A stretch of DNA of 64,000 bases from Paragordius varius (lineage: Eukaryota > Animalia > Nematomorpha), in contig OZ176054.1 in NCBI GenBank assembly GCA_964247055.1, positions 4,402,001-4,466,000 on the forward strand, written 5' to 3'. Positions 25,901 through 59,119 of the stretch are shown one piece after another (positions within the stretch are counted from its first letter, which is position 1; every line of letters begins with the position of its first letter). Both the position numbers and the translations under genes were made by a program. Below the pieces are notes generated by a model. It was not told the origin of the DNA. It searched no databases and saw nothing but the letters and a program-made list of their open reading frames with translations.

Positions 25901-28156
25901 GCATGCGCAGAGATAGAGATATGAAATGAAAATATTATCAGAATGTATTGATTAAAATATCTTTAAATGATAATCCTTTCATGTTTAAGGCTAAAAATGA
26001 AATACAAATTAATAACAAAAACTGCGAACTAAACTTATTTTGATATTTTTTTCAGTAATCAATGATGTTATGCGTAAAAACTGTTTTAAGTTATTTACAG
26101 TTTTTTTCCAATCGGCTGCAATATAACCGAAAAAATGATCGGTATTGAAAAAAAGCTAAATTATAAGATTATTTATTGAGTTTGTGATTACATACTTGTA
26201 GCGTTCTCCGCAAGACTAATATTTTCAGCGAGACCGAAATCGCCAATTTTTATCGTGTCACGTTTATCTAAAAATATGTTGGCAGGTTTCAAATCCCGAT
26301 GAATTATACCTTGGTCATGTATATAGGACAAACCTAAATTTCCATATAACACCAATAATATACCGTGCAAAATTTCTCGAATATATCGCCAAGCCCTACC
26401 ATGTTGAGCATATAACATATTATTTTCAATGATGTATTTAAGGGTTTTATTTTCACAATATTCCATTTGGATGTATATAAGTTTTATTTTTATGTTTCTT
26501 TTTTCATCATCCGTGGTGTCAACAACACAGTCCCTCGTTCTTTCAAGGCTAGTTACTATGCTTTTATAACTGTCATATTTGTCGGATTGGGCTAAATTAT
26601 AATCATTTTCATCTATTTCACAAGATTCCAGCCATGAATTATAATACCTAAAATAGTAAAATAAATAAAACGCTTATAAAAAAATTTAAATAATGATGTG
26701 TGGGGTAACAAGAAAGGACAGAATTGAGAATAGATTTATTCGTGGGAGCACAGATATTAAACCAATAGTGGAAAGAATGTGAAAAAATAGGCTACGTTGG
26801 TTCGGTCACATTGAAAGGAGAGATCTAATTTTTTTGCAAAAATAATAGATAGTTATATAGTTGAGGGAAAACGAGGACGTGGGCGGCCTAAAACGAAATG
26901 GATAGATACAGTAAAAAGAGAGCTAGCATACGAGCTTAATGCAGAAGTCGCCATACATAGAGTTCTATGGCGAGACAGGTTGTACAACATGAACGCTCTC
27001 AAGAGTGAAAACATGCAATGTAATAATAATTATTACCGTAATTAATATAATATGTTGCTATTTTTCATTTTAAATTATGGGTTTTAGATTCAAATTAATA
27101 TATTTTATTTACCGTTTAAATTTTAATATTTAATATCAATTTTTTAATATAAAATGAAAAATGGAGGGAAAAAATGGAAGAAATCAGAACCATAATTTTT
27201 TAGAATATAATCTTAAAACCGAAACGATTTGTCCAGGTATTTTATAAATACTTTCGCTGGTAAAAACTAAATCTTTACTTTAATTTTTAATATTATACTA
27301 TAATAAATATAATCAAATGGCTAATATATACCGTTTTTATGTAATCACCGAAAAATTTATATTATCGTTTGAGCTTTCAATTATTTTAAAAATTTAACCT
27401 TACAACGTTTTTGGAATCCAGACTACTTAAATATTTTATTTCTTGCAATATCTTCTCTTCATTGTCGGCAAAATACATTGGGACCCTTTTGATAGCATAT
27501 AACATCCCATCTAATTTATTTTGCGTTTTTATGACATCTCCAAAACCACCTCTACCCAAGTGTTCAATAATACAAAAATCTGCGCTTAAACGTGTACTTT
27601 TTTCATCAACCAAAGAAACCAGATCTAAAATATATTAGATAATATCGGGAAAACCTGATATTCGAAGCGTTTTATTTGATTCATTTTTTGTATTTTCAAG
27701 TTTAGGTAAAAAAGTATCTGGGTGTTTATATGTCGGTCGAATAGTATTTCTAAAAATTAAATAATTACATTACAAATCATTGATAAATTTCTGAATTTTT
27801 ATGATAATTTCAGATAACAAATATGTACCAATGTGTTTTGCAGAATATAAGGAGATCAAATTTTTTAGTGATTGTAGTTCACGTTTCCCAATTTTATTTG
27901 AAGAAACAATGCATATTTTTGGATGTCTATTATTAAACAAAAAAATACGTTTTGGGATACCGATCTTGACAAAAGACTTTTATTTTAAGGAAATAAATAT
28001 CGGCTTTAAATAATACAAAAAAAATTATTTGGTTTATAGTCTGTGTTATATATAAAAATATACTGGACAAATTTTATTGTGATCGTCCAGCACAACGCTA
28101 AAAACTTCGGACAAAAATGACAATTCGTAATTTAATTTTGATGGCATGGTCAACAT
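22941..28156 (-). CDS. EIF2AK4: GCN2-like eIF2alpha kinase: RWD + kinase + HisRS-like + C-terminal region; no pseudokinase domain
   Basis: RWD ([10 protein letters not shown]...RYPKTHPKI...[10 protein letters not shown]), kinase ([56 protein letters not shown]), HisRS-like ([38 protein letters not shown]). Start at 28156 or 28147. The exact 3' end is uncertain. Confidence 0.88.
26695..27035 (+). mobile_element. RTE LINE 3' fragment inside a GCN2 intron (antisense to the host gene)
   Basis: [12 protein letters not shown]...[11 protein letters not shown]...[18 protein letters not shown]...W, followed by a (TAA)n tail. Confidence 0.88.
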
Positions 28157-28164
28157 CTGCCCAC

Positions 28165-29254
28165 ATGAATGTTATTGAATTACCTATGGCACTAGTCAAA
28201 GAAATATCAAATAATCAGGATATGAAAAAATGGTCCAATTCCACGGCTTATATGGATTATTTATCTTTTCTTAAAGAGTTAAATATTTCAATTGAAGGAA
28301 AGTTAGATGTAAAATCAGAATCTACGGTAATTAAATATTTTATTTAAGGCTATCCATGGGTTAATATCTTTATTGGATGAAATTAAGGCCTACATAGACC
28401 AAAATCCTCCTATAAAACAAAATCAAAGATTTGGAAACGCTGCTTTTAAAGGATTTTACTCAACCTTGTCTAAAGTTATTAAAATTTAAATTAAAGAATA
28501 TACCTAATCTTTTACAAAAATATTTATCAGTTGAAAATAATATTCCCGAAATTAGCTATTATTTAAACGAAAGCTTTGGAAATGATAGTCGTATTGATTA
28601 CGGAACTGGTTTTTCCATTTAGCTAAATTAAGGTCACGAACTTTCATTCGTAATATTTTTATTATGTTTGTACAAAATTAATTTATTTGGCAAAGAAGAT
28701 TATCCCTCTATAGTTCTTAACGTATTTGAACAGTATTGATTATTATTATGGTAATTATAGATATATGAGATTAGTTAGAAAACTTATAACGGTTTATCAA
28801 ATGGAGCCTGCTGGCAGTCACGGTGTTTGGAGTCTTGATGATTATAGTTTTCTTCCGTTTTTATTGGGAAGTGCACAATTAAAAAGTGGCATTTTATTAT
28901 CTTTATAATATATTTAGAAACAAACATTGAAGTATCATCATTTATTGATCCGCATATGGTAGAAAAATACAAAAATAATTGCTTGTTTTTTAGTGCCGTA
29001 GCCTATATAAACCAAGTTTTTACCGCTTTTATAATATTAAAAAAGGTTAAAACTGGAGCCTTTTCCGAGCACTCCAATGTTTTATGGAATATTAGTGGGG
29101 TACCAACCTGGTCCAAAGTTAATGATGGTTTATTTCGAATGTATAAGGAAGAGGTATAAAATTTTACACGACTTAGGTTTTAAATAAATTCCCAATCATT
29201 CAACATCTCAAATTTGGTGCTCTTTTCAAAATTTCAAACGCTAATACAACATAA
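28165..29254 (+). CDS. PTPA: Serine/threonine phosphatase 2A activator (PTPA / Rrd)
   Basis: [97 protein letters not shown]. Start at 28165 or 28186; stop 29252-29254. Confidence 0.95.
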
Positions 29255-29340
29255 AACCCGTCCTCTTTGATTATCAAAAGCAAAATACACATACAAATAT
29301 ACAATGCCCAAAAACATCATACATAGAGCTTATTTATTTG

Positions 29341-31115
29341 TTATGTTTGAATGATATCCAATACATTGGCATAAGTTAAGGCAATTTGATCTCTGCCATT
29401 ACTCTCGATGTATTTGATCGGTTGGGAGGCTTTATAAAGTTTGGTAATTTTGGATGTATTCATGTCCCATATAAAGCAAAAACCATCGTTTGTACCAATT
29501 ATCAGTTTGGTTTCATCGCATTCTGACCATGTCATATTATTGATCATGCCTTCACATTCACAAATTTTCATTGGATTTAACGGTTTTCTCATATCAATTA
29601 GCTAAATAAAATTGTTTATAAGTTATTTTGTACAGTTTCCTAATTATTATAATTATAAATGTTATTACTATGGATATAACTTAACATTATTTCAAAAATA
29701 TATTAATATTAGTGCTTATTTTGTTTAATATACGCTCATTGTTAAGAGTAAAAATGATCAATTTTTTGTAATTTTTACATTAGTTTTATTTGAGAAATTT
29801 TTAATGCTAAATCATATGTAAAAAATTACGACAAGATCTTTTGAATCCGCAGGCAATACGGTCAAATAATTTGAATTATTTTTATTCCAAGATAATTTTA
29901 CAAATGTTTGGGGACTATCTTCATATAGTATAGTTGAATGTTCCAAATGTCTCAAATCAAATATTCTTACAGATGAGTCGGCACTTACTGTAGCAAAAAG
30001 ATCCTTACTCCCTCCACATTGACAAAACGCAATGTCACACACCTCTTTATCATGGGCAACTATTTGATTGATTAGTGTTGCACTAATTTTCGATTCGGGT
30101 GAATATGAACTTATAGGTTGTTGAGTCTAATATAAATCATATAGAGTATGAATAAATTGCGATACTTAAACTGCTGCCCAAAATGCTTTTTTATGGCCCT
30201 AAAATTTTATTATAAATATCCGCAAAGGTGTCAAACAGTATTAAAATTTTATCGCTATTATCGCCCTTAAGACAAAAAAAATTTTTGGCCCTTTAAATTT
30301 TTTTTCGTTAGTATCACCGCTTTATAGTTATGATTCGTCGAAACAGCAAATCATACTTTTTATAAGTCTATTTTGGCATTTGTTTTTTAAGAACGAAAAA
30401 TGCGTTTAAAACCCACTAAAAACTAAAGAATCTGCATGTGTTCGTTACCTTCAAATTAATATGTGACTAATATCGAATATATTTAAATAGCTGTTATAGA
30501 TTAAAGGGATAATATTTAAATATTGTTGACTATATTTTGTTTAGAATCCTTTGTCCATTTTTAGATATCAATATTTCAAAGTTTTTAAAATTATTAATTT
30601 ATTTGTTAATGTTATATATAATATATACCTCCAATGACCATATAGTGCAAGTAGTGTCTATACTGCATGTAGCCAGCAAATTTGGATTTATTGGACTCCA
30701 ATCAAATGATGTCAGGGGGGCGGAAAAATCTAGATCATTATTCTAATATAGTTTTATGATTCAACCTTTTCGAATTCGCAAAGTAGATTAGGATTAATTT
30801 GGCTTACATCATATATGCGCAATATATCACTCGCTGTTGCAATAAAATTTGTATTCTGAAATTTAAATAACCGCTACCTTAGGCATATATTTAATTTTTG
30901 AAGCAGGATATAATTCAGATATTTGACATAATTCACTCTTGTTTTCAAGGCTAAAAATTTTAACCTAATTGAGTGAATATCCATACTTTGTTATGAGATT
31001 TTTCTATAAAACTACCAACTGCTATGTTGACTAGATTATCCCATGAACAGGCAAATAAGGGATCGAAAGAAGAAAACTGAAATAGCGGTGTGCTTGTCAT
31101 ATTGGAATGACCCAT
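29341..31115 (-). CDS. DCAF7: DDB1- and CUL4-associated factor 7 (WDR68/AN11 family WD40 protein)
   Basis: [22 protein letters not shown]...[54 protein letters not shown]. Start at 31115 or 31100. Confidence 0.92.
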
Positions 31116-31771
31116 TGTGCTAAACAAATGTAATCATCTGAGTTTACAGTTGTATTGTGCAAATGAAATAATTGACGCTTAATTTTCTTTGCAAAGCGGT
31201 TCAGCATTTTTGAGCTTAAATATAAAGACATATCTGTTTTTAAGTTATTAATAACACGGTCCCAAATTAGGTGCAAAGATATTCTGATAAAATATATATT
31301 TTTAAATATAAATGCATTGAAATATTTGCAGAGGCGTTTTTATATCTAACGAATGGTGAAAATTGCCGATGGGGATGGATATTTTTTGAATTAATCTCAG
31401 TATAACATCATCGCGTTTAAAAATTCAAAATTTGGCAATTTGGTGAAGTAGCCTCGAACTCCTATAATAGTGTTTGAATCATTTACTTACACACTCGAGT
31501 TTGTAAACTGTGTTATTAGATAAAAATATATATCTTTTATCCTAAAGCGATAAAACTGCGTCAAAAATCAAAGGTATAGGAAAATGATCGATAAATATAT
31601 TATGGGAAAATGTATCAGAATTATCATGGTGCTTTTGGTTTTGGCCCTTACGAATGATATAATTACACTTTTGTGGTACCTCTATAACAGAGAATGGCAA
31701 AATTTGAGAATATTTAAATATTATTTTTTTGGTGAAATCAAAATGCTCTTTCCGAAAATTTCAGTAAATTA

Positions 31772-34662: not shown

Positions 34663-35039
34663 TTATATTTTAAATCTATATGCAGCAAAAAAAATTTAAT
34701 CAAATTTTTTCGCTCTTCTAAAATGGGCTAGTTCTCTTAAAACATACGCAAAAATGTCTGGATTGCACTATAAAATTTTTTAATATATACTGCTTTTTGG
34801 TATCAACTAAAAAAATTCTTTAAATGCATAATCTTTAGCAAAATTTTGTTAAAGCACCCTTCTTACTATTTTGCATGATGGTAACCAAATACAAACGCTA
34901 GATACAATAAAAACCCTTTTTCTATATATTTCTAACTCACAAATCTGATTATATTCATTGCTCTTTAAATTTAGTTTATAAAATGTTTTTTTTTGCTTAA
35001 AATAATAAATTAAAATAAAGCGATAGACATATTCAGCAT

Positions 35040-38388: not shown

Positions 38389-39109
38389 GCCCCACGCTTA
38401 GCTGTGACTAGCTCACCGATAATTATTCTAATAAAAATCCTCAAATTAATAGAGGAAATGGAAAAAATTAATAATAAGATATAAACTAGATAGGATGTCT
38501 CTAAACATTCTTTAGGGGGTCATATGCTTATATATTGCACCAATTACTTAAAATTGGCCATATTAAAACTGTCCCTTATTGATCAACTATCATCGGACTT
38601 ATTTTAAGATTGTTTTTATATAATATTACTCGAATGTTTTATTGAGGGAAAGTGTTCTCACATAGGCTGGGACTAAATTCAAAGGATTTAAAAAGATAAT
38701 TGATTTGTGATCTTATTTATAAAGGATAGTATAATATGACTATACAAATCCTAGAAATGTGTTTTCAACAATATGTATTTTTGGTGGCATATGTTATAGA
38801 TAAAGAGCATCAAAAATCTTAACCCTAATACAAATAGTAAGATTGGTAACAAAGTTATTTTATTTTGCCAAAAAAATCTTTTGGATTTTTATGGGTATTT
38901 TTTGTGAAACGTCATTTAAAAGAAGCAGCTAGTTACAGGAGCTAATTTTAATACAACTGCTCTGCCAAATTAACTATATAATTAAAATACTAGTTTTATT
39001 TACATATCGTTATATGTAGATAAGTAAAATTTATTTAATTTTTAAAATAAAAAAATATGAAAAAGACATCTAATTAATCTTTGGAAAATTTAAAATTACA
39101 GTCCATGCA

Positions 39110-41030
39110 TAAGGTGACCAGACGTCCCGCTTTTGGCGGGACAGTCCCGCTTTTTCACACTTTGTCCCGCGTCCCGCTAGGTTTTTAATATGTCCCGCTT
39201 TTTCACGATTATATAAAAAAAATATTTTTAATACAAATAAATTTATCTGTTATCATTAAATATATTTAAAATCTATATAAATTTTAAATTAATAATTATT
39301 TTTTTCGAATTTATATCATATGATTATACACTTTCCTTCCTACTACTACTGTCATCATTATCAAATAGCGAAGTTAATACCACAAATCTTTAAAAGACAA
39401 ATTGATACCACAAATCGGTACCTTAAACGTTTATTCCAGAAAATTAAGGTAATATAATATTTATTATACTAATAGTAGTTTATAAATATGAGCACAAAAA
39501 GAGGTTGTAAATTCAACGATGAATTAATGAAAGATTTTCCTTTTATCAAAAAAACGAAGAATGAATCATCTGTTGAATGTATTATTTGCGAGGGGGAATT
39601 CACCCTAGCACATGGCGGCAAGTATGATATTACAAAGCTGGAAACACAGAAACTTAAAAAATGTTTAGATATGGCAACATCATCTTACAAAATGAGCGAT
39701 TTTTTTCGAAAAACCGTTTTTGGAGAGGAAGAAAAGAATTTGGCACTAGCTGAGGGCGTGTTATCTTTTCACGCTGTTAATCACAATCATTCCTTTTGAT
39801 CTATGGACTGTACCACAGAGTTTATTCGCACGTTATTCCATAAAAAATTTACATGTGCCCGTACAGGGGTGTAAACCATTGAATGCAATGTCCTTTCGCC
39901 ACATGCATTTTCTGAAATACAAAAAGATTTGCTGAAAATTAATTTCATATCGCTATACTTTGATGCATCAAATTACAAGGAAACAAAATTATTTCCCACT
40001 TTAATATGATATTTTGATTCAGAAACCGGAGTAAAAATTAAAATTTTAGATTTAATTTCTCTACCCGGTGAAAATTCCGAAATAATATTTACTTCAATAA
40101 TGCATATTCTAGAAAAAAATAATTTAAAAGACAAAATTATCGCATATTGCGCTGACAACACCAATACGAACTTCGGTGGAAAAGCAAGGAGGGGAACGAA
40201 TAATATTCATAAATTAACAGATAATCATTATCAAAACATTATTGGCGTTGGGTGTGAAGCGCATATAATACACAACGCTATTCAAACAGCTGCTGATTTG
40301 TTACCACTAGATGTGGAAAATGTAGTTGTTATAATATATTCCTATTTTTATATATACACGGTACGTGTTGAAACGCTTAAAGAATTCTGTGAAGATGCAG
40401 AACCTCAATATCAAAAAATGCTTGCATATTGTAAAACTCGTTGGTTAGCTTTTATCAGCTATCGAAAAAATTTAAAAAATTTATAATCCTTCAAAATCAT
40501 TTTTTTATCACAGGACAAATGTCCTACAACTTTAAAAAAGTTTTTTGAAAGTGATTCTTCAAAAATATGGTTAGAATTATAATCAAGCTTCTCTCTTTCA
40601 AAATGTTATAGAATTTATAGAAGGTGACAAAACTTCGGCAATCGAAGTAGCCAATGAAGTAAGTAACCTAAAATTCCAATGTCAAGAACGGTTAGAAAAT
40701 AATTTTATACCATTAACCATCCGCAATATAATAAATTTAGAAAAACAAGGCTTAATAAATCGCCAAGATATCCTGTACCATATAAAAATGTTTTATACAA
40801 ACTGTAAAGATTATTTGGAAGACTGGACATTTTCATTGGATAACATTAAAATCAGAATTTAATTGGTGCGATGTTCAAAAATCATTTGATTATATCTGTT
40901 CCTAAAAATTCTCAAAAAGTAATCTTTCAGAAAATGATCTTTTTTCTGAAGAATCATTAGTTAAAAGATATATTAATAATGAAAAACTTAAATTATGGAC
41001 AAAGAAAAATTATATAAATAAAGACTGTAC
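39110..41030 (+). mobile_element. hAT (Blackjack-like) transposon with decayed BED-finger transposase; right TIR missing
   Basis: Left end AAGGTGACCAGACGTCCCGC...GGGACAGTCCCGC with five GTCCCGC repeats. Fragments ECIICEGEF..AHGG, ISLYFDASN, YCADNTNTNFGG, GCEAHIIHN, KTRWL. Confidence 0.88.
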
Positions 41031-44400: not shown

Positions 44401-46587
44401 ATACATTAGATGACGTATCTGATGATACGATTGAGTTATATTTCAATTCTTACTTTATTTTACTGCCCAAGAATCCAAAATTAATCACAAAACTTTTTAG
44501 CCTTTATGATGAATGCAATGCCAGGGCCAAAAAAGTGTTATTACGTGTTGTTGATACTCCGGTATAATATAATTTGAATATAAAGGTAAAAATTTTGAAT
44601 GGTATTGAATCTCAAGATTTAGTTGATGCACTAAAAGATGAAAGTTGTCAAGCGGGGAAAGATCCACTCATCACACGTCTAATACAAATTATGGCCACAC
44701 TTTATACTGCAGGGACTGTTCACAACACTGGTATTATACTAAACTAATTTTTCATGGCCAGATGCGTATAAAAATAATTTTATTATTTCTATTTTTACGC
44801 ATCGCGCTATAAAAATATTTTCTTAATATTTTAAACAATGTACGTAACACGCTATAAAATATTTCTTATTCATTGGATTCATATATATATATAATGTTAT
44901 TGTAGGACATTTGACACCGTTGAATATGTTAAAAAAACCGTTATCACCCAAACTTGTTAGCTTAGTCAAATACTTGTATTTTGAAACAAAGAGTGTTACC
45001 GACGTTAAAATAACGTTACCAGTTATAAATGGGTTATCTCACGAGGACATCATATCACTCCTCCCTAAATTTATATCCATTAACAATATCAATTTGGTAA
45101 AGGATATACTATTTAAGTGTTGTTCTGTTAGTAATTTATATCCAAATTTGCTGTCACCTACGGAACTTTTTGTAGCCCTTCACGAAATCCAGGTTTCAGC
45201 TTCAAACGAAAAAGGTATGTGTGAAAAAATTTTAATGTATCACATAAAACGGTTTTTTCCATATTTTTTATTGTTATTTGAAGATAAGCAATTATTTAAT
45301 ATTTTAAGCATATTTATTTTGAGTGAAAATACAAAGACTCTCTGTGCAAAACATTACTAGTTTTTCAGAAACTAGGCTTATAAATGTCATTATTGTTAAT
45401 TAAAATATTAGAATATTTTAATTTTTTGTTTACGCAATCTTAACAATGTAATATATTAATTAAAATTTTGGTTTACCGTCAAGCTCTTTTTATTTATAAA
45501 TAATTAACCTTTAGTTTTTGATAATTTTTTGTTAAAATATATAGAATATTAACGTTTTTTATGCAATTTCAAAAAAATTCATTTTAATCAGATAATTCAA
45601 ATATGTGTGACACAAAAAACGTTATTAAAGCAATCAATATATGTTTTGGAAACAAGCGATTATTTAATTCTGATGTTTTGATGCATTCATTGGATTCAAT
45701 GATTAACATTAAACCATTACCCTTATTATTTATGCGAACTGTGATACAATGTGTTGTTCAATATCCACATTTAGTCAACTATGCCATCGATATTTTATTT
45801 AAATTAATACAATTACAGGTAACCAATATTTTTTGTCACGATAAATTTGGACTCTTTTACATAATTTAGGTAAATATATATGTAAATCATGGTTCTAGAA
45901 ATACAGGTTTAAGCAAAAAATGACTAAGAGAGTTTAAATGACCAAATTTGATGTGGTTTATTACTATATATTCAGGTTTACCAAGTGTATTTCCAATCTA
46001 TATTTTTTGTTTTTAATTATACAATAGAGTTTATTCCTCATTTAAAATGTCATTGGGCCTATTTCTAATAATACCAGCAACAATATCGATATTTAATATA
46101 AAATTATAAATTTTAACATTTAATTATGTTTTAATGCGAAAAAATATTATTATTTTATTGTTATTTACATGTTTTTTGAACAACCATTTATTTAAGAGTT
46201 TTTATTTTAAAAAATTTATAGTGGTATGCAATTTTCTCATTTATTAATTTATTTTGCTATAACATTCTATTTTTGGTAATAAAACGACATATAAATTGTT
46301 CATTAATCATTATTTATCATTTATTTACATTTAAAGGTATGGAATCAAAAACAGGCATGGATAGGTTTTGTTAAATGTTGTGAAAAAATTTTACCACGAT
46401 CAATATGTGTCTTATTGTCATTGCATGAAAAACAATTTATAAATGTGTTAGAAATGGCCCCACAGTTAAGAGAACCATTGAAAGAATATTATAATAATTT
46501 GTCGAGAGAAAAGGTTTGTTTTTTCCTATACATATTTTTTAGCAAAAACAAATTCCCATATACATTGTTGATGAAATAAATAACTAA
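41426..46587 (+). CDS. SYMPK: Symplekin (scaffold of the cleavage/polyadenylation complex)
   Basis: N-terminal HEAT region ([32 protein letters not shown]), [73 protein letters not shown]. Stop TAA at 46585-46587. Confidence 0.9.
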
Positions 46588-47687
46588 CCCTTTATGATTT
46601 GTATTACATCTTCATCATTAAGTATATGTTCTTTTCCAACTCTTTGTGGGTTGTGTTTAACCGAGCTACCCCAAACTTGGGCATATTTAAATTGAGCAAG
46701 TATAGTTTTGTGGATACTATTACAAAAATCTTCCACTGTGCGCGATTTTTGTTTTAAAATGACAGGACTGTTATAATCAGGTATTTGCCCTTTTGGTTTA
46801 GTATATATCCGTAAAAGCTTCATATATTCCCACATAGTTTCTAAAAGTTCATCAAAATTCCACTTTAGATGAGCAGATATTGGAACACAATGGGGGAGTT
46901 GTGATAGAATGTTTAATTCTTCCAAGGAAATGTCATCTATTTTGTTTAGCACATAAATACAGGGTATATAAACTCTATTACCCTCTATAACATCGATAAA
47001 TTCGTCAGTAGTTACATCAGTACGAAAGGTAATATCGGCATTGTGTATCTTATATTCACCCAATATATTTTTTACCTGGTCATAATCGAGTTCTGATTGC
47101 GGTACTAATGCATTGAAATTAATACCACCACCAATTTTATCTTTGCGTTTAAAGCTAATGGGAGGAGGACTTTTATTTAATCGTATGCCGAAACCATCCA
47201 GTTCTTTTTCCAACAATAATTTGTGTTTGAGCGGTTTTGTAACATCGAGTATCATTAAAATTAAATCACACGTTCTTGCTACAGCTATGACTTGTTTACC
47301 TCTGCCTTTTCCATCTTTCGCGCCTTCAATTATGCCAGGAAGATCAAGCAGTTGAATTCTGGCACCCTTATACTTTACGACACCTGGTACGGTAGTGAGT
47401 GTTGTAAACTCATAAGCTGCAACTTCGGAATAAACGCCAGCCAAGTTAGAGAGAAGCGTACTTTTACCAACCGATGGAAAACCCACAAAACCGACACGAG
47501 AATCTCCAGTTTTAGCGACATCAAATCCTTCGCCAGTGCCACCACCGCCTGATTTAGGCGTAATAAGTTCTCTTCGTAGTTTTGCTAATCTAGCTTTCAG
47601 AATTCCCAGATGACCCATTGTAGCTTTATTTCTTTGCGTACGAGCCATCTCATTTTCAATTTCACTAATTTTTTCCAACACGCCCAT
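46584..47687 (-). CDS. DRG1: Developmentally regulated GTP-binding protein 1 (intronless, 367 aa)
   Basis: [60 protein letters not shown]-terminal TGS domain. Confidence 0.98.
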
Positions 47688-47819
47688 GCTGATATTTGAT
47701 TGTATGAAAACGTATGTGCAATCACCGCATGAAATCTTTCTTTTTTCGGTTTATAAAGTAATGCAATACTTATAAATATATAAAATATAAAAATATGGTA
47801 TTGTAGCTGCTTTTATTAC

Positions 47820-48830
47820 CACTTCAATTTGAATGGTATTTAAATGCCCGGGACTATATTTAATTTTTCAAAAACTACAGAAGGAAAATCCAATTAATTT
47901 ATGCTTCTAAAATAAATTATATATAAGCCGAATTTCTTAATAAATTGTGTTTACAAAAATTATTCCATATTAAACTACTTCGACGCTATTTTTACAAAAT
48001 AGCGTGCAAAATATCGTGTTATAAAATTTTTTTGGATACAACTTCATTTTAGTTTTTAGGATCATATTAGGGTAGTAAAATTAAATATTTTGAAAATTTA
48101 CATTGAAACTTTGGGAAAAATTTGCACTTGTAAATTAATGAACCAAAACATAAACAAAATTTATTTAAAATTGATATTACTTATTCAGAGGTTAAACCCA
48201 AGGGTTTAATTTTAGCCAAGTGCATAAGCTAAATATAAAAATAAAGCAAATATCAATGATGCGATTTTAATAAAAAGGTAAATAAAATTTTAGGCTTAGA
48301 ATCAAATAAACACGATATTTTGTTGCCGTTTAAGTAGTTTGATAACGGAACTTTTGTCAAAAATTAAATTTAGATATTTTGGCCTCTTTTTATTATTTTC
48401 TTATAATAGAAGCATAAATTTAAACTCTTTATGGTATTTTTTTAAAAATATTAACGTAATTATTGTCTGTGGTATTTCGATACCCCAATTGGAGTTGAAG
48501 TATTAAAGTTAAAATGAATTATTTTTTATTTTTATCACATCTAACATTGATAAAAACAGAAAAAGCTTTATTTTGTATAATTTTTACATTTAGCTAAGGC
48601 TCACATGTCATGTTGACTAAATCTTTACCTTTGTGATTTGTGTTAAATTAAGTAATATAAATTATTTTGAATATTTTTTTTATTTCAGTTTATTCTTGTT
48701 AGATAGTGTTAATCTTTGCCATGGTTTCGATTTTCCATGTTTTTTAATTTATATTTAGGGGCATCCACCGGCCCCAATTCGAATCGAAGGACTGAAATAG
48801 AGTATTTTATTCAGTCAAAAAATTTAAATG
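47820..48830 (+). mobile_element. Family A MITE (copy A3) carrying a nested reverse family A copy (about 48090-48502)
   Basis: 47820-48030 and 48505-48830 join to a + copy. The insert is a reverse-complement A copy ending GAGTTGAAGTA|TTAA. Confidence 0.65.
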
Positions 48831-49094
48831 TTATTTATAAATCAATAATGTGAAGGATATTTATATGTATTGCAAAATAATTTAAACGACTTTATCTTAA
48901 AATATGGGCTGCTACTACGATTTCAAAAAACTCTTCTCTACCTGAACCTTATAAGGCATTTTAGTATGGATTTAGTTTATAATGTGACCAGCTATTTTGA
49001 ACCTTGACGCAGTACAAAATTTAAACATACTTTGCCTGTTTTTACACCATCGGTGTAGTATATTACACAGTTTCCACAAAAAAACATCCTGATG

Positions 49095-49097
<3 letters not shown>

Positions 49098-49124
<27 letters not shown>
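49098..49124. repeat. (AT)n microsatellite
   Basis: About 13 AT units. Confidence 0.95.
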
Positions 49125-49125
<1 letters not shown>

Positions 49126-49580
49126 CTAGAAGGAAAATATCAGGATTTTCATGGTGCTTTTGGTTCTTTACGAGTTATTAAAGAAAGTTATTTACACTTT
49201 TGTGGCAAGTGCTCCGTATAAAATTGCAAAAGGTGTGCAATTTTTTCAAAAACATTTTGTGTTCAAAACTAAATGCTTTATAACAAAAATATCATTAAAA
49301 TATAACATAACTACATATGAAAAGCAGTATTTAAACATTTTGTTAGTTGTGGGCTCTGAAAGTCCCAAATTTTTTAGCACTTTTAAAATGGACTCTTCTC
49401 TTAAATATAACGCAAAAATTCGGACATTTTGCAATTATTTTAAATATATGCTAAATTTTGATATAAATTGAATGTATTTTTTGAAAAATGCATACTTTCA
49501 AATTTAATTTTTAGCAAAATTTTGTTGAAGCGTACTTCATATTATTAACAGGATGATGGAAACGATATAAACGGTTGAGA
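49125..49580 (+). repeat. Family C dispersed repeat, most complete copy
   Basis: Matches 7520-7745, 31560-31771 plus 34663-34910, and 35040-35510. Confidence 0.65.
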
Positions 49581-50789
49581 TGTTATAACACTTATATATA
49601 TAATTCGATGCCATTTTTCTCACTCAGAATCAAAAATTGTTCATTTTTAAATATATGTTAAATAAAAATTGTGTTTTTTTTAAAAAAATTCACCAAAATT
49701 TGCAAGCCAGCAAACTTTTAAAGTAAAATTCTGAAACTATAGTAAAGTTCAACATAATCGAATTAGAAAAGGGTTTTATTATATTAAAGCGAGTACGCGT
49801 CAACAAAATATATCAAATTTGTTGGTGCAAAAAATAAGAAACTCATAAAAATTGAAATTTAGGAAAAAAATTAAGAAATATCATACCTCCGACCTAATGA
49901 GTGTGGAAAATGTAAAAAAACTGTTAATTTTTTAATATAAAAAAAGGTTTTCGATATCATGTGCCATATATAATAAATTTTAAATAATATGTTACTATAA
50001 TAAAAAATGAACTTTCTAAACTTGTTCAAACATTTATTCAAATATCATTAATTAATTTTGTTACTTTTTAATTTTGAGGCACCTCTTTTTGCGGAAGCTC
50101 TTAGTAAAAGAGCTACCCTGAATCTTACGGTAGAGTTCGAGATTTATAGTTTCGCTATTGCGGGAAAGGTTGAATCATAAGTTTTATGTATGATTTGAGC
50201 TGAAAGTGAAATATTAACCAATTAAAAATAGGCCAATCTAAGTTTTTACCGCAAAATGAACCATTTCTTTACACATTATGGCGTTATTTTTACAGAGGTT
50301 ACTATATCAAATTCTAAAATAATTTTTTAAATAAAAAAAGCTAATTAATATATATTCCTAAAAAATTATTTTTTAATTTCAAAAAGCAGTGTTATTCAGT
50401 AATGTATTGCGAAAAACAGCCTATCTGGTCACATTTTTATTGCCAAATAAATCATGTTTTATCAAATAATTCCGCCAAATTATGAGTTATTTACTTATCG
50501 GATTTACAGGTGTAATTCTAACCTTCAGCATGAATATATACCATCTTTGGAAAATAATTTGCTTAGTATAATAATATTATCATAGGTTTAATATAAAACT
50601 TTGATTAAAAAAGTTAAAAATGCAATGTATAGGATATATATTTGTTTGTATAGCATTTATATATTTGATTTATCATCACAGATAAGTTCATAAAGTTTGA
50701 ATTATCTTTTGAAATACTCGTATATACCAGAGCGTAAGAAATTTGGATATCTTTAAAATTATTAAAAATATCATTAAAGAAACATATAG

Positions 50790-51010
50790 ATATGATACCG
50801 GAACTTACCAAATAGTTTTAGATCAGAATTAAAGGATAGGAGAATAATTAGACAATAAATGTAATTCCGAATAAACATGGGGATCGATAAAAATGTGATT
50901 ACTGAGGTGCAAAGGTTTAAGAGGAAAGATAACAAAAGGATTCTTGAAAAGAGATAGGAGAAAAGCAGAAATATAAATGAAAAGGTAGATATGTTAATGT
51001 AATAAAATTA
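50790..51010 (+). mobile_element. Decayed RTE LINE fragment related to 63800-64000
   Basis: GATATGA..C.GAAC.T.CCAAATAGTTTTAG...TGTA..TC.GAA.AA..ATGGGGA.CGATAAAAA...AAGAGGAAAGATAACAAA is shared. Confidence 0.65.
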
Positions 51011-51359
51011 TTGCAATAAAGGAAACGGAGATAAATTGATAAAACAGTGTTCACTCAAAACAATGTCTTTAACTTTTCTTTTGCGCGATTATGCACAGGC
51101 TCAAATATGTACCTATAAACATAAAATAGGCCGTGTAAAGTCCCTTATTAAAGTTACTATTAAAATATCATTGATTTAGATCTTTAAAATCTTCATAAAA
51201 ATGTATAAAAAAATTTCGCTATCTATATATTAATAAAAATAAGAGGTGTGAGCTTTGATCTAGGCTTGGGAAAAACAGATAAGCCTATTCCGATTCCAAG
51301 GTAAAATATATTTAATCCTTTATTGATATGTCGACAGTGACTGTCTTTTTTTGAATGAA

Positions 51360-54300
51360 GCTATGAGCTCAGCTTCACCTCGTGTAAAAATCACTTTTTT
51401 GAAAAAACGGGAGTTCCCAAAATTTTAAGTTTGAACGATGTGTACAGAAAACGTGTGGACCCACTAGTTTCAATAGTGTTAAAATTTACGCACCGAGGGT
51501 CACTTTGCCCTTTTTTGAAAACTCCCTTAGTTTAGCAATACACTATTAAAAATTGGGATTTTGGAATTGTTGGCTTTTTAACACAATGCTGAAAAATGTG
51601 TGGGCACAGTCAGTTTAAAGCTTTTTTAAATCGTTTTACAGTTGCAAGTGACTAAGCGCTTTTTTTATATTAGGCCCACATTTTGAGCCCATTTAAGGTA
51701 AAAATAGGGGATTTAAGATAATATAGACCAGTATTCAAACCGCGGCCCGCGGGCCGCATGCGGCCCTAAGAGTGCTTCAAAATTGCCCTATGACCATATT
51801 AATACTTATATTATTTTTTTAACACATAAACGAATTTTCGATTATTTTTATACTAATTTATTTTCTTTAGATTTAATTTTGGTAGTTTTTTTTACCCAAT
51901 TCGAAATGTAAAAAATTTCCCCACTAAAATAATTTCAAAAATTTGGCACACGTTGTTTCTGTTTCTGTTTCTGTATTCTATTTTCTTTTCTATTTTGAAA
52001 TTTTTACTGCATTCCTTTTTGTATTTAAGCAAGCCTTTCACCCAAACTTGCATATACATATTCTTTTCACAGCTATCCTGCCTCATTTTTTATAACTCAT
52101 TCCCATAAAATATTTTTCCAATAAACATCATTAATTTTCAACGTTTTTTTATAGCGTAATTTAAATTATATACGTATTTTTTGAAAAAATTTACATAATA
52201 ATTAAACATAAATTCAAAGGATGACATCTAATGCTAAAAAACGTAAATTATCCGATGAAAATCGCCTTTTAAAAAAGAATGGGAAGAAAAATTCTTTGTC
52301 GTTTAAAATAAAAATGTTGTTACCTGCCTTATATGTAAGGACAACATAATTAAAAATACAATATTGAAAGAATTTTACAATCCATGTTTTTCATAAATTA
52401 CCAGAAAATCATGAGGAAAAACGAAAAATATAAAAAGATTAAGGAATTATACCAGAAAGGAAAATCTATTATGTCCATAGCTTTCTCCCAGGAAAAAGTT
52501 GTATAATTCGTATGAAATTTGTTATATTTTAGGAAAAAATTTGAAATCGGTTACTGATTCCCAACTAAAAGAATGTCTAATAAATGGTTGCACTTTTTTA
52601 TTTCATAAATTCCATGTAAAGATCAAATCATGAGGCAAAACTTTATGCAACATGTGCACGACGCATTAAAGATATGTCTTAATATATTTTTAACAATACA
52701 TTATTGGCTCTGAAAAACTGCAAATATTTTAGTAAAGCTATTGATTCTAGCACTGATATTCGTACAACACCTCAATGTGCGCTCTTCGTAAGATTTTGCA
52801 ACGACAACATAATCACGATAAATATTTAAAATTTTTACCAATGAATAATACCACGAAAGGAAGTGATTTTCTCGAAATAATTAACACTTTTTTCGATAAT
52901 AATGGTATATCTATAAAAAATTGGTTTCGATCTGCACAGATGGCTGTCCCTCTATGATTGGAATAACCAAAGGATTTACTCCTCTTTTGAAAAAACGATT
53001 ATAATTTACAAAATATTTTATCCTTTTACTGCTTTATTCATCAGCAAAACTCGGTTTCGCGTGTAAAAGATGAATCACTCAATTCAGTAATTAAAACGGT
53101 TGTTTAAATAGTCAACCACATCCGTGGCAGAGAATTCAACCGCCGTAAATTCAAAAACCTTCTGAAGGATATCCACAGTGAGTTTGATTATATGCTTTTG
53201 TACACCGCTGTGAGATGGCTAAGCCTTAGCAAAGTATTAATAGATTTTTTGTATTAAGACATGAAACTCTATTATTTATAAAAGATAACAGAAAGTTTGA
53301 CGAGGAAATTAATAGTGACATATGGTGGGTTTTATTAGTCTACCTTTGCGACATTACTTATAAACTTTTTTAATACGTCGTCAAGGAAGCAAAATAATAA
53401 CTTAATTTGCTAATCTTTTAAAAGTTAATAATATAAACTAGATTTTATAAGTTAAACACTCCTATATTTTCCAACACTTAAAACGATTCATGAAGAATAT
53501 ATGGAATTTAGCAGATTAATTTAATAATAGATGATTTGACATTTTTATCTAATGATATATAATTCCAATTTCAAAAATTAAGATATATTAAAAATTGCTT
53601 AAAATTCGTTGAAAATCCATGGCATATGAATATATTCAATATTAAACAACTTGAGCATTTCGGTTTTGATAAGGCGCATATCATTGAAACTTCGTAGGTT
53701 TTGAAAATTCCGATTTGGGTATTAAAAGAGAATCGCAGAGAAGAAAGATATGTAGAGTTTTGGCAAAATGTGCCAAATAAATATGAAAATATAAAAAAAT
53801 GTGCTCAAGTTATCCTAACTCTTTTTCCCTCAACTTATATGTGTGAGACGTCATATTCAAAAATAAAATATGTCAAGAATACATACAGAAACCGCTTAAC
53901 CGATGTTCATATGGAGGACGTATTAAGATTGGCCTGTCATGAGGTGAAGCCAAATTTGTCAAAAAATATTGGTTAATTTCGAAATTAAAATTGTTATCGA
54001 ATTATTTTAATTTTTTAAACTAAATGGTAAACCAGTTTTTAGCTGGATTTACATGCGATCCGCAAAAATTTCATTGTGCTGATTTAGAGTATAAATATGT
54101 GCATATGTGTAAAATAGCTATGGAATATTTGCCATTATAAGGTTCATGGCCCTCAAAAAAAATATATTTTATTTGGCCCGTCAATTTTTTTTTTGGTGAG
54201 TACCACTGATATAGACATTGAAGCCATTTTTTGGAAAGCTTTTAGGCCCAGGCAAATTAAAAATCGACTTTTTAAATTGTTTTGCAATTGCGCCGAGGGT

Positions 54301-54560
54301 GAGTAAACCCTTAATTAGCCGTCCAGCAACACCCGTGTAAAAATGGGTTTTTTAATAAATAATGGTTTTAAAGTATTTTCCGAAAAGCGTATAGGCGCAT
54401 TCAGTTTGAATGTACTTTTTTACATTTAGCCTCTCAGTTCCGGCCCGCCCATGTAAAAATAGTTTTTTTGAACAATTTCTGACTTTGAAATACGATCCTT
54501 GAAAATGTGAAGAACAGACCCGTTTTTAAATTAGCCCCTTATTTCAGCCCCGCCAGTGAT
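51360..54560. repeat. Family D diverged array with a unit of about 190 bp (51360-51720 and 54217-54560), split by the Buster hAT
   Basis: C(C)GTGTAAAAAT..TTTTT, GAAAA(C)GTGTGG(G)C.CA.TCAGTTT and CAATTG(C)GCCGAGGGT recur. Confidence 0.55.
51729..54208 (+). mobile_element. hAT Buster/Charlie-type transposon with degenerate transposase
   Basis: Perfect 8-bp TSD ATATAGAC (51721-51728, 54209-54216). Ends CAGTATTCAAACCGCGGCCCGCGGGCCGCATGCGGCCC / GAGTACCACTG. Fragments AKKRKLSDENR, AIDSSTD, YCFIHQQ, YTAVRWLS, FPSTYMCETSYS..K.VK..YRNRLTD. Confidence 0.93.
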
Positions 54561-54899
54561 TTTTACTAGAATACTTACTTTAAGCAAAATTTAAAATTAG
54601 AAATATTTTGTTGATAAATTCGTCACTGACAACTCCACCACATATTCCCATCTGTTCATGTAAAAATGAAGTAATCTGACATACCATTTACAATTCAAAT
54701 TTACCATTAAACAATCAATATATATTTTTTGTAATTTTTCTGATGTATCAACTATTAGATAATAATGCATTAAACTTAAAAGGAGAATTGTGGTCAAACT
54801 ATTTTGTAGGTCTTCGTATTCTGCACTAACATTGTTTCGATTATCTAAATATTCTCCTAATTAATGGTAAATATTCTCTTACTGGATATAGGTAGGTAA

Positions 54900-55670
54900 T
54901 TTCTTAGGTCGAGTTAGACGCCTGGGAAAAAATAAAATGACAGTTTCCTCATTTACCAGATTCCTTCCAGTGTCCAGTCATCTTAACATCGGTCTTCCTT
55001 TTTCCATTTCCATTCAACTTCCCAAAAAAATAAATTCTTAGGGACGTATTTCTTAAATGTGCCCTATGTACGCAAACTTTCTTTTTGTTATAGCTCCCAT
55101 TAAGATTTTCTCAATATTGAATATATCTCGTATTGTTTCATTCTTAACCTCGTCATATTACCTTATATTCAACATTCTCCTTCAATATCACATTTCGAAT
55201 GCTGCAATTCTTTTATCATTCATTTTGTCCAACTTTCTAGCATCATTTGCTGCCGGAAAAATCAAGCATTTCATTGCTATCACTTTAGTTTTCATAGTGA
55301 TATTATTATTTATCCATAATTTAGTCCACTTGGCAGCTGACTTTGATAATGCTATGCGGAGTTAACCATCAATTAATGAATATATACAAACATTTCACCA
55401 TGTTCCCGTTTCCGAAGGCTTTGCGAAAATCCAAGAAGAATAATAAGTGCCTTCTTTAAACATCATATTTTGAATTTATATTATTTAGAGCATCAGAACA
55501 TCATATAAATGTCAATATAAAATAAAAAATTTATTTAGCGTATAAGTGTTATTGTTATAACTGATGACAGAAGAGTTTAAAGATGCTGTCAACTATGATG
55601 CAAGCTGACGAACAAATTACATCGCATATCATATTCGAGATGAAATAGTACTCACCTGAAGATTTCTTGT
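54900..55670 (-). mobile_element. RTE LINE remnant, internally deleted
   Basis: LDFRKAF, TMKTKVIAMKCLIFP, RIAAFEM, KFAYIGHI, GRP..RWLD with stops. Confidence 0.75.
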
Positions 55671-55674
55671 CCCA

Positions 55675-55833
55675 AGGGCCGTGCATTATATAATACCGAC
55701 AAATATTGCAAAAATGTTTTATACATTTGCACTTATTAAAATTCTAAATAAGTGCATCAAAAAATTAAATGGATAATTAATGGCCATAAAAAGCCATTTA
55801 TATGGCCTGTGGGCCGCAGTTTGAATACGACTG
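55675..55833. mobile_element. Right end of a MITE related to the 51729 hAT
   Basis: GGGCCGCAGTTTGAATACGACTG is the reverse complement of the CAGT..TATTCAAAC.GCGGCCC terminus. Confidence 0.7.
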
Positions 55834-56030
55834 TTTAAATGTATATTTAAATAAGTAGAATAGTAAACTTAACAAGTTGTATGCCTATATTTATTAAAAA
55901 TAAATTTTAATCATATATAGTGTGCTGAATTAATTATAATATGAGTGCCAGATTAGATAAAGTAATCAGTACAATTTTTTGTATGAGTTTTTGTAAACCG
56001 ATGAAAAAATAACCCAGGATATATATATAT

Positions 56031-56497
56031 AGTGTGCCGAATTTGGGGGTATTTCTACATTTTGTCAGACTCGTAAGCGCCATGTAGGATAAATAAATGC
56101 AAAATAAAACAGGCTTGAACTTTTTAGCTAATATAAGATGTGATTGAATTTTTATCTATGTCTGTATTAATATATAATTAAAATCACTAAAGAAGTTTTA
56201 AAATTGAAATTTTTATATCAATGGTTTTTTAGTTAAATTTCAGCATGTTAACATCTAGCAAAACCACAAAAACGGTTCAAACGATTTAAATTATTTTGGT
56301 ATTTGAAAAAACAAAGATATGTTAAAAATTTTGAGCGTTTTGCATTTTAGCTAAGTTATAGCCCACAGCTGTTTTTGTTTTTTTGCGTTAATTTCTCTTA
56401 TATGGTGATTGATCCCCATTTTTTCGGATTCTGTAAGCCCTTATTAAATCTTGTGAGTATTATAAAACGGACACGAGATATCCCTAAATTGGATACA
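56031..56497. mobile_element. Probable TA-flanked MITE
   Basis: GTGTGCCGAATTTGGGGGTATTTC versus GAGATATCCCTAAATTGGATACAT (imperfect inverted repeats). Confidence 0.4.
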
Positions 56498-56590
56498 TTA
56501 TGATAAATTTGGCATTAATGCGCCGTTTTAAAAACGTATACACATTGAATATAAATATATTGCCATTTATAAACCAAATATTTATTATCC

Positions 56591-57338
56591 TCAAGCTTCA
56601 ACTATTTCATAAAGAAGATGTAAAGCATTTCCTACCGCTAAATTTTTATTTTGTATGTCCCCAAGGGTATCGGAATTCTGTAATTTAATAAATTGTCCAT
56701 TTTTCTCCAAATATATATTATATTCACATTTGTCTGTGTTACTTAATAAATCTCTCATATTTAGATATTTTTTTAAATGTTCAACTATAAATTAATATAA
56801 TTAATACTGGATGCGTTCGAGGTAGTTTTCAAATATTTTGTTGAATCCTTAGACGATTGTTGATTATACGGCTTAAAAATAATTTCAATAGGTTTAACTA
56901 AATTATATATGAAATATAACTTTCTTCAAAAGCGGAACAATTTTTTATCGTATCCATACTTATTTTTTTCCATTTTTGGTGAATCCGTTGCTCATATTCT
57001 TCCCTATATGGATAAATTTTTTTAATTAGTGTATCAAAGGTAGGATCTGGTCGTAACGAACGTTTTGAAATTAATTTTTTACGGCATGTTGGGCATTCTT
57101 TGTTTCCGCTCCTCAATGCTGTGATTATACATTCATGACAAAAGCGATGTAAACATTCTTTCGTTGTCATAGTTTGTTTCAACATATCGAGACAAATAGG
57201 ACATATTAACTCATTATGCAAACTTTGCATAGATATGGCAATTTTGGTGTCATCCTCTATCAACTTCTGTGGTTCACGATTTAATTCGTATAAATTCAAC
57301 TCCCAAACCTTATTTGAAAATATTGTATCAGCAGACAT
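56591..57338 (-). CDS. RNF2: Polycomb PRC1 E3 ligase RING1/RNF2 (Sce), 233 aa
   Basis: Exons 57338-56921, 56897-56808, 56784-56591 (702 nt). [10 protein letters not shown]3HC4 [58 protein letters not shown] domain IEIIFKP...[17 protein letters not shown]. Confidence 0.95.
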
Positions 57339-57350
57339 GCAATAATTGTA
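57339..57350. promoter_or_regulatory. 12-bp spacer between the divergent RING1 and VPS16 start codons
   Basis: Sequence GCAATAATTGTA contains the dyad CAAT-A-ATTG; both starts are fixed by conserved N-termini. Confidence 0.6.
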
Positions 57351-59119
57351 ATGGATACAGCTGACTGGATCCCAAGTGGAACTAATAAATACTACAGGTA
57401 AAAGGGGTTATGTAGAAAATAGGAAATTCGAATTAGGATTAATGAAATGGAAGGACATTCCAAGTTTTTCTCATTATTACATTGCGTGCTCATTATATGG
57501 CGGTCCTCTTGCATTTCTTTTGAAAGACAATGGTGAAAAACAAAAGTGCATGATTATGATTTTATCCGCATTCGGTAGCAAATTGGGCATGATCAAGTTT
57601 TAACTTTATAAAATTTAGTATTTTAGATACTCGTATAGTTCTTATAAGTTGGACTATAGCTTATCCTGATAATTTATTGCTTCTTCAAGATGATGGGACT
57701 ATTTTAATTTATAACCAATTTGGAAATTTTATTAAAAATGATAAGCTAAGCATTCAAGAAAATTGGACCATATTGGATTCACACATATTTTTAAGAGAAG
57801 AAAAGGAGAAAAATACTGGCTTAGCCGTGCTTTCTAGGCTCTTACATCAAAACGTACCACAATATAAACTATTTTACATTGAAAATGTTATGAATAAAAA
57901 TTGTAAAATTGCGGAATTTAAAACAAATTTTGAGTCTTTTAAATGTGTCAATACACATTTTAATACCCAACACATTCAATCTTTTCAGGCATATCGCCCT
58001 TTATGGCATTTGATATATCAATATAATAGAATATATTTGATATCCATCAATTTGAAAAATAATAAATTTTTCATTACCGATAAAAATAATTATGAACTAA
58101 CACTCAACCTTGATTTAAAAGGTAATCAAATACAATTTTCCATTCACTCTAATAACCGACACATTGCCATATATGACAAATATTCCATCCATATTGTAAA
58201 TATTTTATGGGATGCTGATATTTCTAACCTAAATTGCCGCTTACTTTACAGTTTTTGTATTGAATCCGATCCTTTCATTAAAATAAGTTTTGTGTTATTT
58301 GTTCAATTTTTTTATTATAGAAAATGAATATGGAAACGTTTATTGGTGTGGGTCAGATACATTGCTATGCATAGGGAGTGTTAATTATGTTTTGTACTCT
58401 CTTGATGAAGGGTCCACGCAAGTCAATAAACTCTTTTTCACTCTAAACAACACTGAAGATGCAGGCAGCAAAGAAAATGACATCATTGTCATACCAGAAA
58501 TCGATGGTTGTAGATTAATTACAAAATGTACGACATTGTTTGTGCAAAAAGTTCCAACTCTCACAACCAATATATTTAAGATTAGTAGTACATCGTACAC
58601 TTCGTTCCTTTACAACAATTTTTGTGGCGAATCTTCCTCCAAATTTATGACACAAATGTTTAACTTGCACCGATTTCGCACCGAAGATCGAAAAAACTTA
58701 AAACACGCCATTATGGAATGTATTAATGGAGCGTTTGAAGAATACTGTGTATTAAGACAGAAAAAGCTCCTTACAGCAGCATCTTGTGGTCTTAAGTTAT
58801 TGGCATTTACGGAAAAAAGCACAAAAAACATGGTTGGATATTTTTATCGCGCCCTAGGAATTCTAAAATTATTGAATAATCTTAGGTGTTTTGCCGACAT
58901 ACCGCTAACTTACACACAATTTATCATGCTATGTTACTCTGATACAGAAACCAATATATATTCTCTAAAAGACATAGATTCTAGCATCAAAATTGTCATT
59001 AATAAATTAACCGATAAAAAATTTTATGCACTTGCTTTGGAGATTACCAAAAATCTACTGAATGATTCACGTTCCAAGGATCAAATTTTGTGTAAATGGG
59101 CTTGTTCTATGGTAATTTT

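Follow-up and report, generated by a model that had tools for sequence, protein, structure and literature searches.

Interlocked gene pairs with almost no spacer in the repeat-rich genome of a presumed horsehair worm

Giardia and the nucleomorphs have gene-packed, reduced genomes with very short or absent untranslated regions (UTRs), and nucleomorphs also have tiny introns. Natural antisense pairs of tail-to-tail genes occur in yeast, fly and plants, where the overlap usually lies between long 3' UTRs, and mammalian mRNAs with a translation initiator of short 5' UTR (TISU) have leaders of approximately 12 nucleotides (nt) and use a near-cap AUG without scanning, in a G+C-rich consensus that spans the ATG. 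In microsporidia, whose genomes are uniformly compact with almost no repeats, genes abut and transcripts extend into neighbours on the opposite strand (PMC2742732). Bidirectional promoter pairs are defined as genes on opposite strands that are transcribed divergently from transcription start sites (TSSs) no more than 1000 bp apart, an arrangement that is commoner than chance and resists disruption (PMC2423431). Here we describe a 64,000-nt stretch of genomic DNA (C5:4402001-4466000; hereafter, the window) that carries two head-to-head gene pairs, RING1/VPS16 and GCN2/PTPA, and one tail-to-tail pair, SYMPK/DRG1, with almost no space between the partners, in a genome whose long introns and kilobase-scale gaps are filled with repeats.

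A first-pass annotation of the window had proposed that such interlocked pairs form a system-level pattern. The pairs proved to be real, and the same geometry was repeated at five junctions outside the window. All junction coordinates were re-derived from the sequence by script, and searches of Pfam, PDB sequences and the protein Atlas were run exon by exon. Pfam matches for the window genes comprised the RING finger, RAWUL, Vps16_N, PTPA, Symplekin_C, protein kinase and WD40.

The RING1/VPS16 pair is divergent with almost no spacer, as had been claimed, and its start codons are separated by only 12 nt. Its features are as follows:

57336-57338, minus strand: start codon of the RING1/RING2-type E3 (ATG 57338-57336), placed by alignment to human RING2, with no earlier in-frame ATG
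57339-57350, no strand: spacer of 12 nt separating the start codons of RING1 and VPS16, by direct reading of the sequence
57351-57397, plus strand: VPS16 coding exon 1, an ATG (57351-57353) followed by 15 codons and 2 bases, which supplies the start for exon 2
57398-57422, plus strand: VPS16 intron of 25 nt (GT..AG), which joins the two frames and restores the conserved junction Y-R-K-F-E-L
56581-56593, minus strand: RING1 stop codon TGA (56593-56591), after a last exon carrying the RAWUL domain, and an AATAAA 4 nt downstream (56586-56581)

Exon 1 of RING1 (56901-57338) contains zf-C3HC4 according to Pfam and matches human RING2 with an E value of 7e-59. The start was placed at 57338 because the RING2 alignment begins near the N-terminus, with query residue 9 aligned to residue 14 of the full-length human chain, and because the frame has no earlier ATG. 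On the other side of the spacer, the Vps16_N match of VPS16 exon 2 begins at profile position 14, upstream of the only Met in that frame, and no ATG precedes it; therefore, the first 15 codons must be provided from the ATG at 57351 through the 25-nt intron. The 15 residues of exon 1 presumably resemble the N-termini of other VPS16 proteins.

The tail-to-tail pair SYMPK/DRG1 is even tighter, with the following features:

46584-47687, minus strand: DRG1, a single-exon coding sequence of 367 amino acids with stop codon TAG at 46586-46584, placed by full-length homology
46514-46542, plus strand: candidate last intron of SYMPK, 29 nt (GT..AG), starting with GTTTGTT as does the 22-nt intron of SLBP, a gene outside the window
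46574-46587, plus strand: SYMPK AATAAA (46574-46579) and stop codon, at 46585-46587 if spliced or 46577-46579 if unspliced, by sequence reading

Over its full length, DRG1 is 85% identical to its counterpart in the horsehair worm Gordionus sp. and 75-79% identical to those of other animals, and the last exon of SYMPK carries Symplekin_C profile positions 140-180. The two genes had been described as convergent with overlapping coding sequences. Their abutment stands, whereas the overlap depends on the candidate intron: if this is spliced, SYMPK stops at the TAA at 46585-46587 and overlaps the DRG1 stop codon by 2 nt; if it is not, SYMPK stops at 46577-46579 and a gap of 4 nt separates the two stops. 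In either case, each 3' UTR must extend antisense into the coding sequence of the partner.

GCN2/PTPA, the other divergent pair, is the least certain of the three:

28064-28156, minus strand: putative first coding exon of GCN2, with its ATG at 28147 or 28156, from a by-eye reading of E-L-x-x-L-x-x-V-F, which is like helix 1 of RWD
28148-28185, no strand: GCN2/PTPA spacer, 8-38 nt depending on the choice among the ATG positions given here
28165-28326, plus strand: PTPA first coding exon, with its ATG at 28165 or 28186 (Pfam PTPA profile 2-39; human PTPA residues 28-62)
29154-29176, plus strand: PTPA intron of 23 nt, the splicing of which restores the C-terminal stretch after the Pfam PTPA match
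29252-29343, no strand: tail-to-tail junction of PTPA (stop 29252-29254, plus strand) and a DCAF7-like gene (stop 29343-29341, minus strand), with an 86-nt spacer

The spacer of 8-38 nt agrees with the earlier claim of a pair with almost no spacer, but the first exon of GCN2 on which that claim also depends gained no support from any tool, and the next putative GCN2 exon (27773-27979) contains no Met. For PTPA, in the frame opening at 28102, the Pfam and PDB alignments start at residues 32-33, and further in-frame ATGs lie at 28117 and 28141; the use of either would make the coding sequence overlap with that of GCN2. Since PTPA also ends 86 nt from the stop codon of the DCAF7-like gene, GCN2, PTPA and the DCAF7-like gene would form a three-gene chain. 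The third member has an AATAAA on the minus strand at 29338-29333 and matches only WD40 in Pfam; we presume that it belongs to the DCAF7 family. Within GCN2 (27389-28156, minus strand), the RWD-like exons seem to pass directly to the kinase domain within approximately 500 nt.

The five junctions verified outside the window comprise four divergent pairs, which share the opposite-strand arrangement of RING1(-)/VPS16(+) and GCN2(-)/PTPA(+), and one convergent pair. The start codons are 29 nt apart in RPL32/BUD31, 41 nt apart in E2 (UBE2K-like)/LSM12, where LSM12 was recognized by Pfam (E 1.3e-4), 68 nt apart between a UBE2L3-like E2 and an open reading frame (ORF) of 301 amino acids, and 67 nt apart in the head-to-head pair SLBP/LSM1, while the stop codons of the tail-to-tail pair UQCC2/SLBP are 77 nt apart. 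The last two junctions lie in a 200-kb sample, a stretch taken blindly on another contig, in which roughly 18 genes were recognized, that is, roughly one gene per 11 kb; three of these genes (UQCC2, SLBP and LSM1) are interlocked. The E2 family served as an a-priori gene set, and a divergent coding sequence was found within 70 nt of two of its eight resolvable starts. The pattern is therefore genome-wide without being universal; judging by these small samples, between perhaps a tenth and a quarter of gene ends are involved. The three pairs of the window are all on opposite strands, and they thus differ from operons or polycistrons, in which genes on the same strand lie approximately 100 nt apart.

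Two approaches were set aside. Counting divergent and convergent ATG-started ORFs of at least 50 amino acids in 264 kb was too noisy, because most short ORFs in this A+T-rich DNA are non-coding and a first exon may comprise as few as 16 codons. A codon-usage log-odds classifier (2,919 window codons) reached approximately 0.1 bit per codon and barely separated coding sequence from background.

Several of these gene models include introns of unusual brevity. The Pfam match of PTPA (profile 189-275 of 293) ends just before the 23-nt intron, and the tail that is restored by splicing presumably resembles other PTPA C-termini. An LSM1 intron of 26 nt and an SLBP intron of 22 nt (sample C1:5065445-5065600) behave in the same way. 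On this sequence evidence, the tiny introns are real, and those of PTPA, LSM1 and SLBP therefore support the 25-nt intron proposed for VPS16 and the 29-nt candidate in SYMPK. Introns of 22-29 nt occur in the same genes as kilobase-long introns that bear transposons. The tiny introns end in plain (A/T)AG acceptors without a pyrimidine tract.

The window has 28% G+C throughout and belongs to a 110.6-Mb, 28% G+C assembly of 44 contigs, which is not human and which we take for a horsehair-worm-type (Nematomorpha) genome; the published genome of Gordionus has 64% repeats and 26.9% G+C. Our literature search yielded no publication on UTRs, on the spacing of genes or on trans-splicing in Nematomorpha. 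When the window was compared by blastn with the unlinked 200-kb sample of the same genome, at least 18.7% of it was covered by matches, which were located in the introns of ABCG, in the introns of GCN2 and in blocks at 6.9-10.8, 35-41 and 47.9-55.8 kb. No match to this sample fell in the tight junctions of the window. Two repeat features lie next to DRG1:

47858-55802, no strand: repeat-filled block in the DRG1-RING1 interval, defined by blastn against the unlinked sample
approximately 47811-47995, approximately 125-170 nt upstream of the DRG1 ATG: non-coding element of approximately 200 nt, represented elsewhere in the genome by at least 43 dispersed copies with 70-78% identity

Two E2 genes are preceded, at a distance of 150-300 nt, by relatives of the second element that resemble miniature inverted-repeat transposable elements. 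A transposon family with a hAT-transposase-like ORF is represented at 39108-41014 of the window and at 135.4-137.1 kb and 179.5-181.1 kb of the 200-kb sample.

Junction spacing in the window is bimodal, amounting either to tens of bases or to kilobases: four of approximately nine junctions are under 100 nt, and the others are at least 2 kb. A uniformly compact genome would have short intergenic regions throughout and almost no repeats, whereas here the repeat blocks are of kilobase scale and the families reach at least 40 copies. The earlier argument that overall genome compaction cannot explain the tight pairs is thus upheld, with repeats filling both the long introns and the kilobase-scale gaps.

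The 3' ends were assessed by asking whether an AATAAA starts between -16 and +20 relative to the stop codon in the 15 genes with placeable stops, with random stop triplets as background. Nine of the 15 genes have such a signal, against a background of 13.9% (P = 4e-5); in the region of the window, the count is three of five placeable stops (SYMPK, the DCAF7-like gene and RING1). The claim that AATAAA lies by most stop codons therefore holds within these limits, with PTPA and DRG1 as exceptions. From this placement we infer very short 3' UTRs, of the type that characterizes microsporidia.

For the 5' ends, we used 19 starts that we had placed ourselves in the window, at the E2 and other loci and in the 200-kb sample. 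ATGs upstream of the start codon (uATGs) showed no depletion at -13 to -40, where 12 were seen and 9.7 were expected (n = 19). VPS16 has a uATG 14 nt upstream of its start, and out-of-frame uATGs lie 12-26 nt upstream in VPS16, LSM1, LSM12, the 301-amino-acid ORF, the UBE2N-like and UBE2L3-like genes and others. A purine occupies -3 in 9 of the 19 starts, which is no more than base composition predicts and reveals no Kozak-type preference. The commonest base at -1 is T (10 of 19 starts). Repeat copies also come close to the start codons, ending between approximately 50 nt (UBE2N-like) and approximately 170 nt (DRG1) upstream. The nearest is the following:

L030:1219-1395 (C5:7923233-7923409): G+C-rich dispersed element of approximately 175 nt, like a short interspersed element, with at least 40 copies at 80-87% identity

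The distance from the end of this element to the start codon of the UBE2N-like gene is approximately 50 nt. The element was also considered as a gene for a spliced leader (SL) or another small RNA, which was ruled out because it is a dispersed repeat and has no Rfam match.

Taken together, the undepleted uATGs, the lack of a purine preference at -3 and the proximity of repeats suggest that leaders are at most approximately 10-25 nt long and that promoters span tens of bases. The first-pass annotation had offered three mechanisms for the 5' ends, namely TSSs inside the coding sequence of the neighbour, 5' UTRs of only a few nucleotides and SL trans-splicing; this indirect evidence leans towards very short leaders, whereas trans-splicing gained no support.

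A short palindrome recurs near the starts and is present in the RING1/VPS16 junction:

57358-57363, no strand: palindromic CAGCTG box, 7 nt into the VPS16 coding sequence and 25 nt upstream of the RING1 ATG

Four of 13 promoter regions contain a CAGCTG at -61 to +14 relative to the ATG, where 0.27 would be expected; this observation is post hoc and unreplicated. The sites, which often read CAGCTGT(T/A), are that of the window (57358-57363), L021:1785-1790, L023 at approximately 1372 and L032 at approximately 1865. The other 18 CAGCTG sites in 264 kb include none that is clearly at a gene start, and three of them lie in hAT transposon copies. We take the box to recall the E-box core-promoter motif of fly housekeeping genes. 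The spacer of SLBP/LSM1 (C1:5065445-5065511, L007:5445-5511) contains a GGCGCC core in the context TTGGCGCC, which resembles an E2F site; such a site would fit S-phase control of SLBP, and the products of SLBP and LSM1 both act on histone mRNA.

The explanation that we favour, and to which we give an even chance, is that these genes have compact bidirectional promoters with very short leaders and very short 3' UTRs. They would be intact, ordinary animal housekeeping genes with extremely short functional ends. At the 3' end, the poly(A) signal usually sits on the stop codon or within approximately 20 nt of it; at the 5' end, the signals for the start of transcription and translation would fit into a few tens of bases around the ATG. 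Nothing dispensable would be left wherever two genes face or abut each other without an intervening transposon, giving starts 12-70 nt apart and stops 0-90 nt apart. A transposon inserted into a tight junction would break both genes and be purged by selection, while insertions elsewhere would accumulate, which would produce the bimodal spacing.

With 12-70 nt between the ATGs, a shared promoter region is unavoidable. This would be a compact bidirectional promoter with elements extending into both first coding exons. Transcription would start in the spacer or at its edge, leaving leaders of approximately 10-25 nt or less, and ribosomes would initiate at the first AUG, close to the cap and lacking a Kozak-type context. 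In convergent pairs, the 3' ends would form an antisense overlap of between a few and some tens of bases. The geometry, its repeated occurrence, the position of AATAAA and the repeat distribution are observed directly in the DNA, whereas the positions of transcript starts and ends are ones that we infer.

Several points weigh against this explanation. The window was itself selected for showing the pattern, and the samples from which frequencies were drawn are small (at least 2 of approximately 17 junctions in 200 kb and two of eight E2 starts). With 19 starts placed by ourselves, a depletion of uATGs down to half of chance is only weakly excluded. DRG1 and PTPA have no AATAAA near their stop codons, and the RWD-like exons of GCN2 found no match in Pfam, PDB sequences or the protein Atlas.

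As regards their origin, the pairs may go back to a very small genome of ancestral hairworms, which transposons later re-inflated, as opposed to having been tightened in place by deletion bias and selection. We regard this view as plausible but somewhat less likely than not. It draws on the bimodal spacing and on the introns of 22-29 nt, which are typical of strongly reduced genomes and stand here beside kilobase-long introns carrying transposons; however, an ongoing deletion bias would lead to the same picture if insertions into shared control DNA are also selected against. A broader proposal, which we consider speculative and rather unlikely to hold in full, is that horsehair-worm mRNAs in general have leaders of at most approximately a dozen bases, 3' UTRs measuring a few tens of bases and a cap-proximal AUG without Kozak context. 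Such an architecture, which resembles that of Giardia or microsporidia and is not known from any animal so far, would be the footprint of an extreme reduction of the ancestral genome, preserved together with introns of 22-29 nt in a transposon-rich genome of 110 Mb.

Alternatively, the promoters might cross, such that each TSS lies inside or beyond the first coding exon of the partner and the transcripts overlap antisense at their 5' ends, with leaders of ordinary length. A 12-nt spacer is indeed too small for two conventional core promoters, and transcripts that overlap their neighbours are known from compact genomes (PMC2742732). Longer leaders would also be harmless for RING1, RPL32 and the RAD6-like and UBE2D-like E2 genes, which have no uATG for more than 90 nt upstream. 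However, the leaders of VPS16, LSM1, LSM12, the 301-amino-acid ORF and the UBE2N-like and UBE2L3-like genes would then carry their out-of-frame uATGs at 12-26 nt, and uATGs overall are undepleted at -13 to -40, and for these reasons we regard crossing promoters as unlikely.

It is less probable still that the 5' ends are made by splicing, either by trans-splicing of an SL just upstream of the ATG or by means of a distant untranslated exon and a 5'-UTR intron. Nematomorpha are, as is established, the sister group of the trans-splicing nematodes; spliced 5' ends would account for the undepleted uATGs, and many starts have an AG within 1-25 nt, as does DRG1, with an AG 1 nt ahead of its ATG. Nevertheless, AG is enriched at no position upstream of the ATG, and the UBC9-like and CDC34-like starts have no AG for approximately 45-65 nt upstream. 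The search of the genome with Rfam SL1 (RF00198) gave no match at E values up to 10, with 50 of approximately 38,000 candidates scored, and the 24-mer consisting of SL1 plus GT had no match in the genome with up to three mismatches. The 5S rRNA genes occupy approximately 20 dispersed loci (for example, C3:6978424 and C4:291195-315190), with no single tandem array and no common companion gene: across six 5S loci, only 5S itself was shared, Rfam was otherwise blank and no 5S-linked SL gene was found. Trans-splicing, which had been put forward as a candidate mechanism, thus found no support from an SL1 match, an SL1-like 24-mer or a 5S-linked SL gene, and we consider splicing-made 5' ends improbable. 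A small 5S cluster with genes in both orientations is present at C4:0.29-0.32 Mb.

Finally, a gene-model artefact, with the true starts and stops elsewhere and spacing that is ordinary, is hardly credible: although the N-terminal exons of GCN2 have no database support and other minus-strand ATGs lie at 27684-27914, the SYMPK stop hinges on the candidate 29-nt intron and PTPA has four possible in-frame ATGs, the termini of RING1, DRG1, RPL32, BUD31, LSM1 and the E2 genes are pinned down by residue conservation that reaches the terminal codons, the conservation of VPS16 reaches upstream of the only in-frame Met of exon 2, and leaving the 29-nt intron unspliced would still place the SYMPK stop 4 nt from that of DRG1.

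If the favoured explanation is correct, the gene ends of an animal lineage would match those of the most reduced protists in shortness, within a genome made up mostly of repeats. Genome size and the compaction of gene ends would then be separable, and control regions could stay compact after the genome had expanded again. Core promoter elements would have to reside in coding sequence, and little room would be left for regulation through UTRs, for example by microRNAs or upstream ORFs. There is also a consequence for annotation. Standard gene predictors ignore introns shorter than approximately 30 nt and do not expect abutting genes, which leads to mis-annotation of hairworm genes; such errors may inflate reports of missing universal genes in Nematomorpha.

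Compared with known systems, the divergent pairs differ from the bidirectional promoters of vertebrates and other animals, in which the TSSs may be up to 1000 bp apart and the start codons are farther apart still; here the start codons are 12-70 nt apart, and therefore promoter elements must lie inside coding sequence. The convergent pair departs from the antisense pairs of yeast, fly and plants in that the coding ends themselves abut or overlap (SYMPK/DRG1), with the poly(A) signal at the stop codon. The 19 start contexts are A+T-rich and share no motif, unlike those of TISU mRNAs. With the SL operons of nematodes and tunicates, these junctions have very short distances between coding sequences in common, and leaders added near the ATG would hide the true TSS; however, the pairs here are on opposite strands and hence form no polycistrons, and no SL1-like gene or sequence was found. 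There is also a likeness to reduced eukaryote genomes, which show the same tight gene packing and, in nucleomorphs, tiny introns; the UTRs of this genome would presumably be similarly short. In contrast to microsporidia, this genome measures 110 Mb and sets kilobase-scale repeat blocks and transposon-bearing introns beside its tight pairs. What is new here is that the tightness of compact, repeat-poor genomes occurs inside a repeat-rich animal genome with introns of 22-29 nt.

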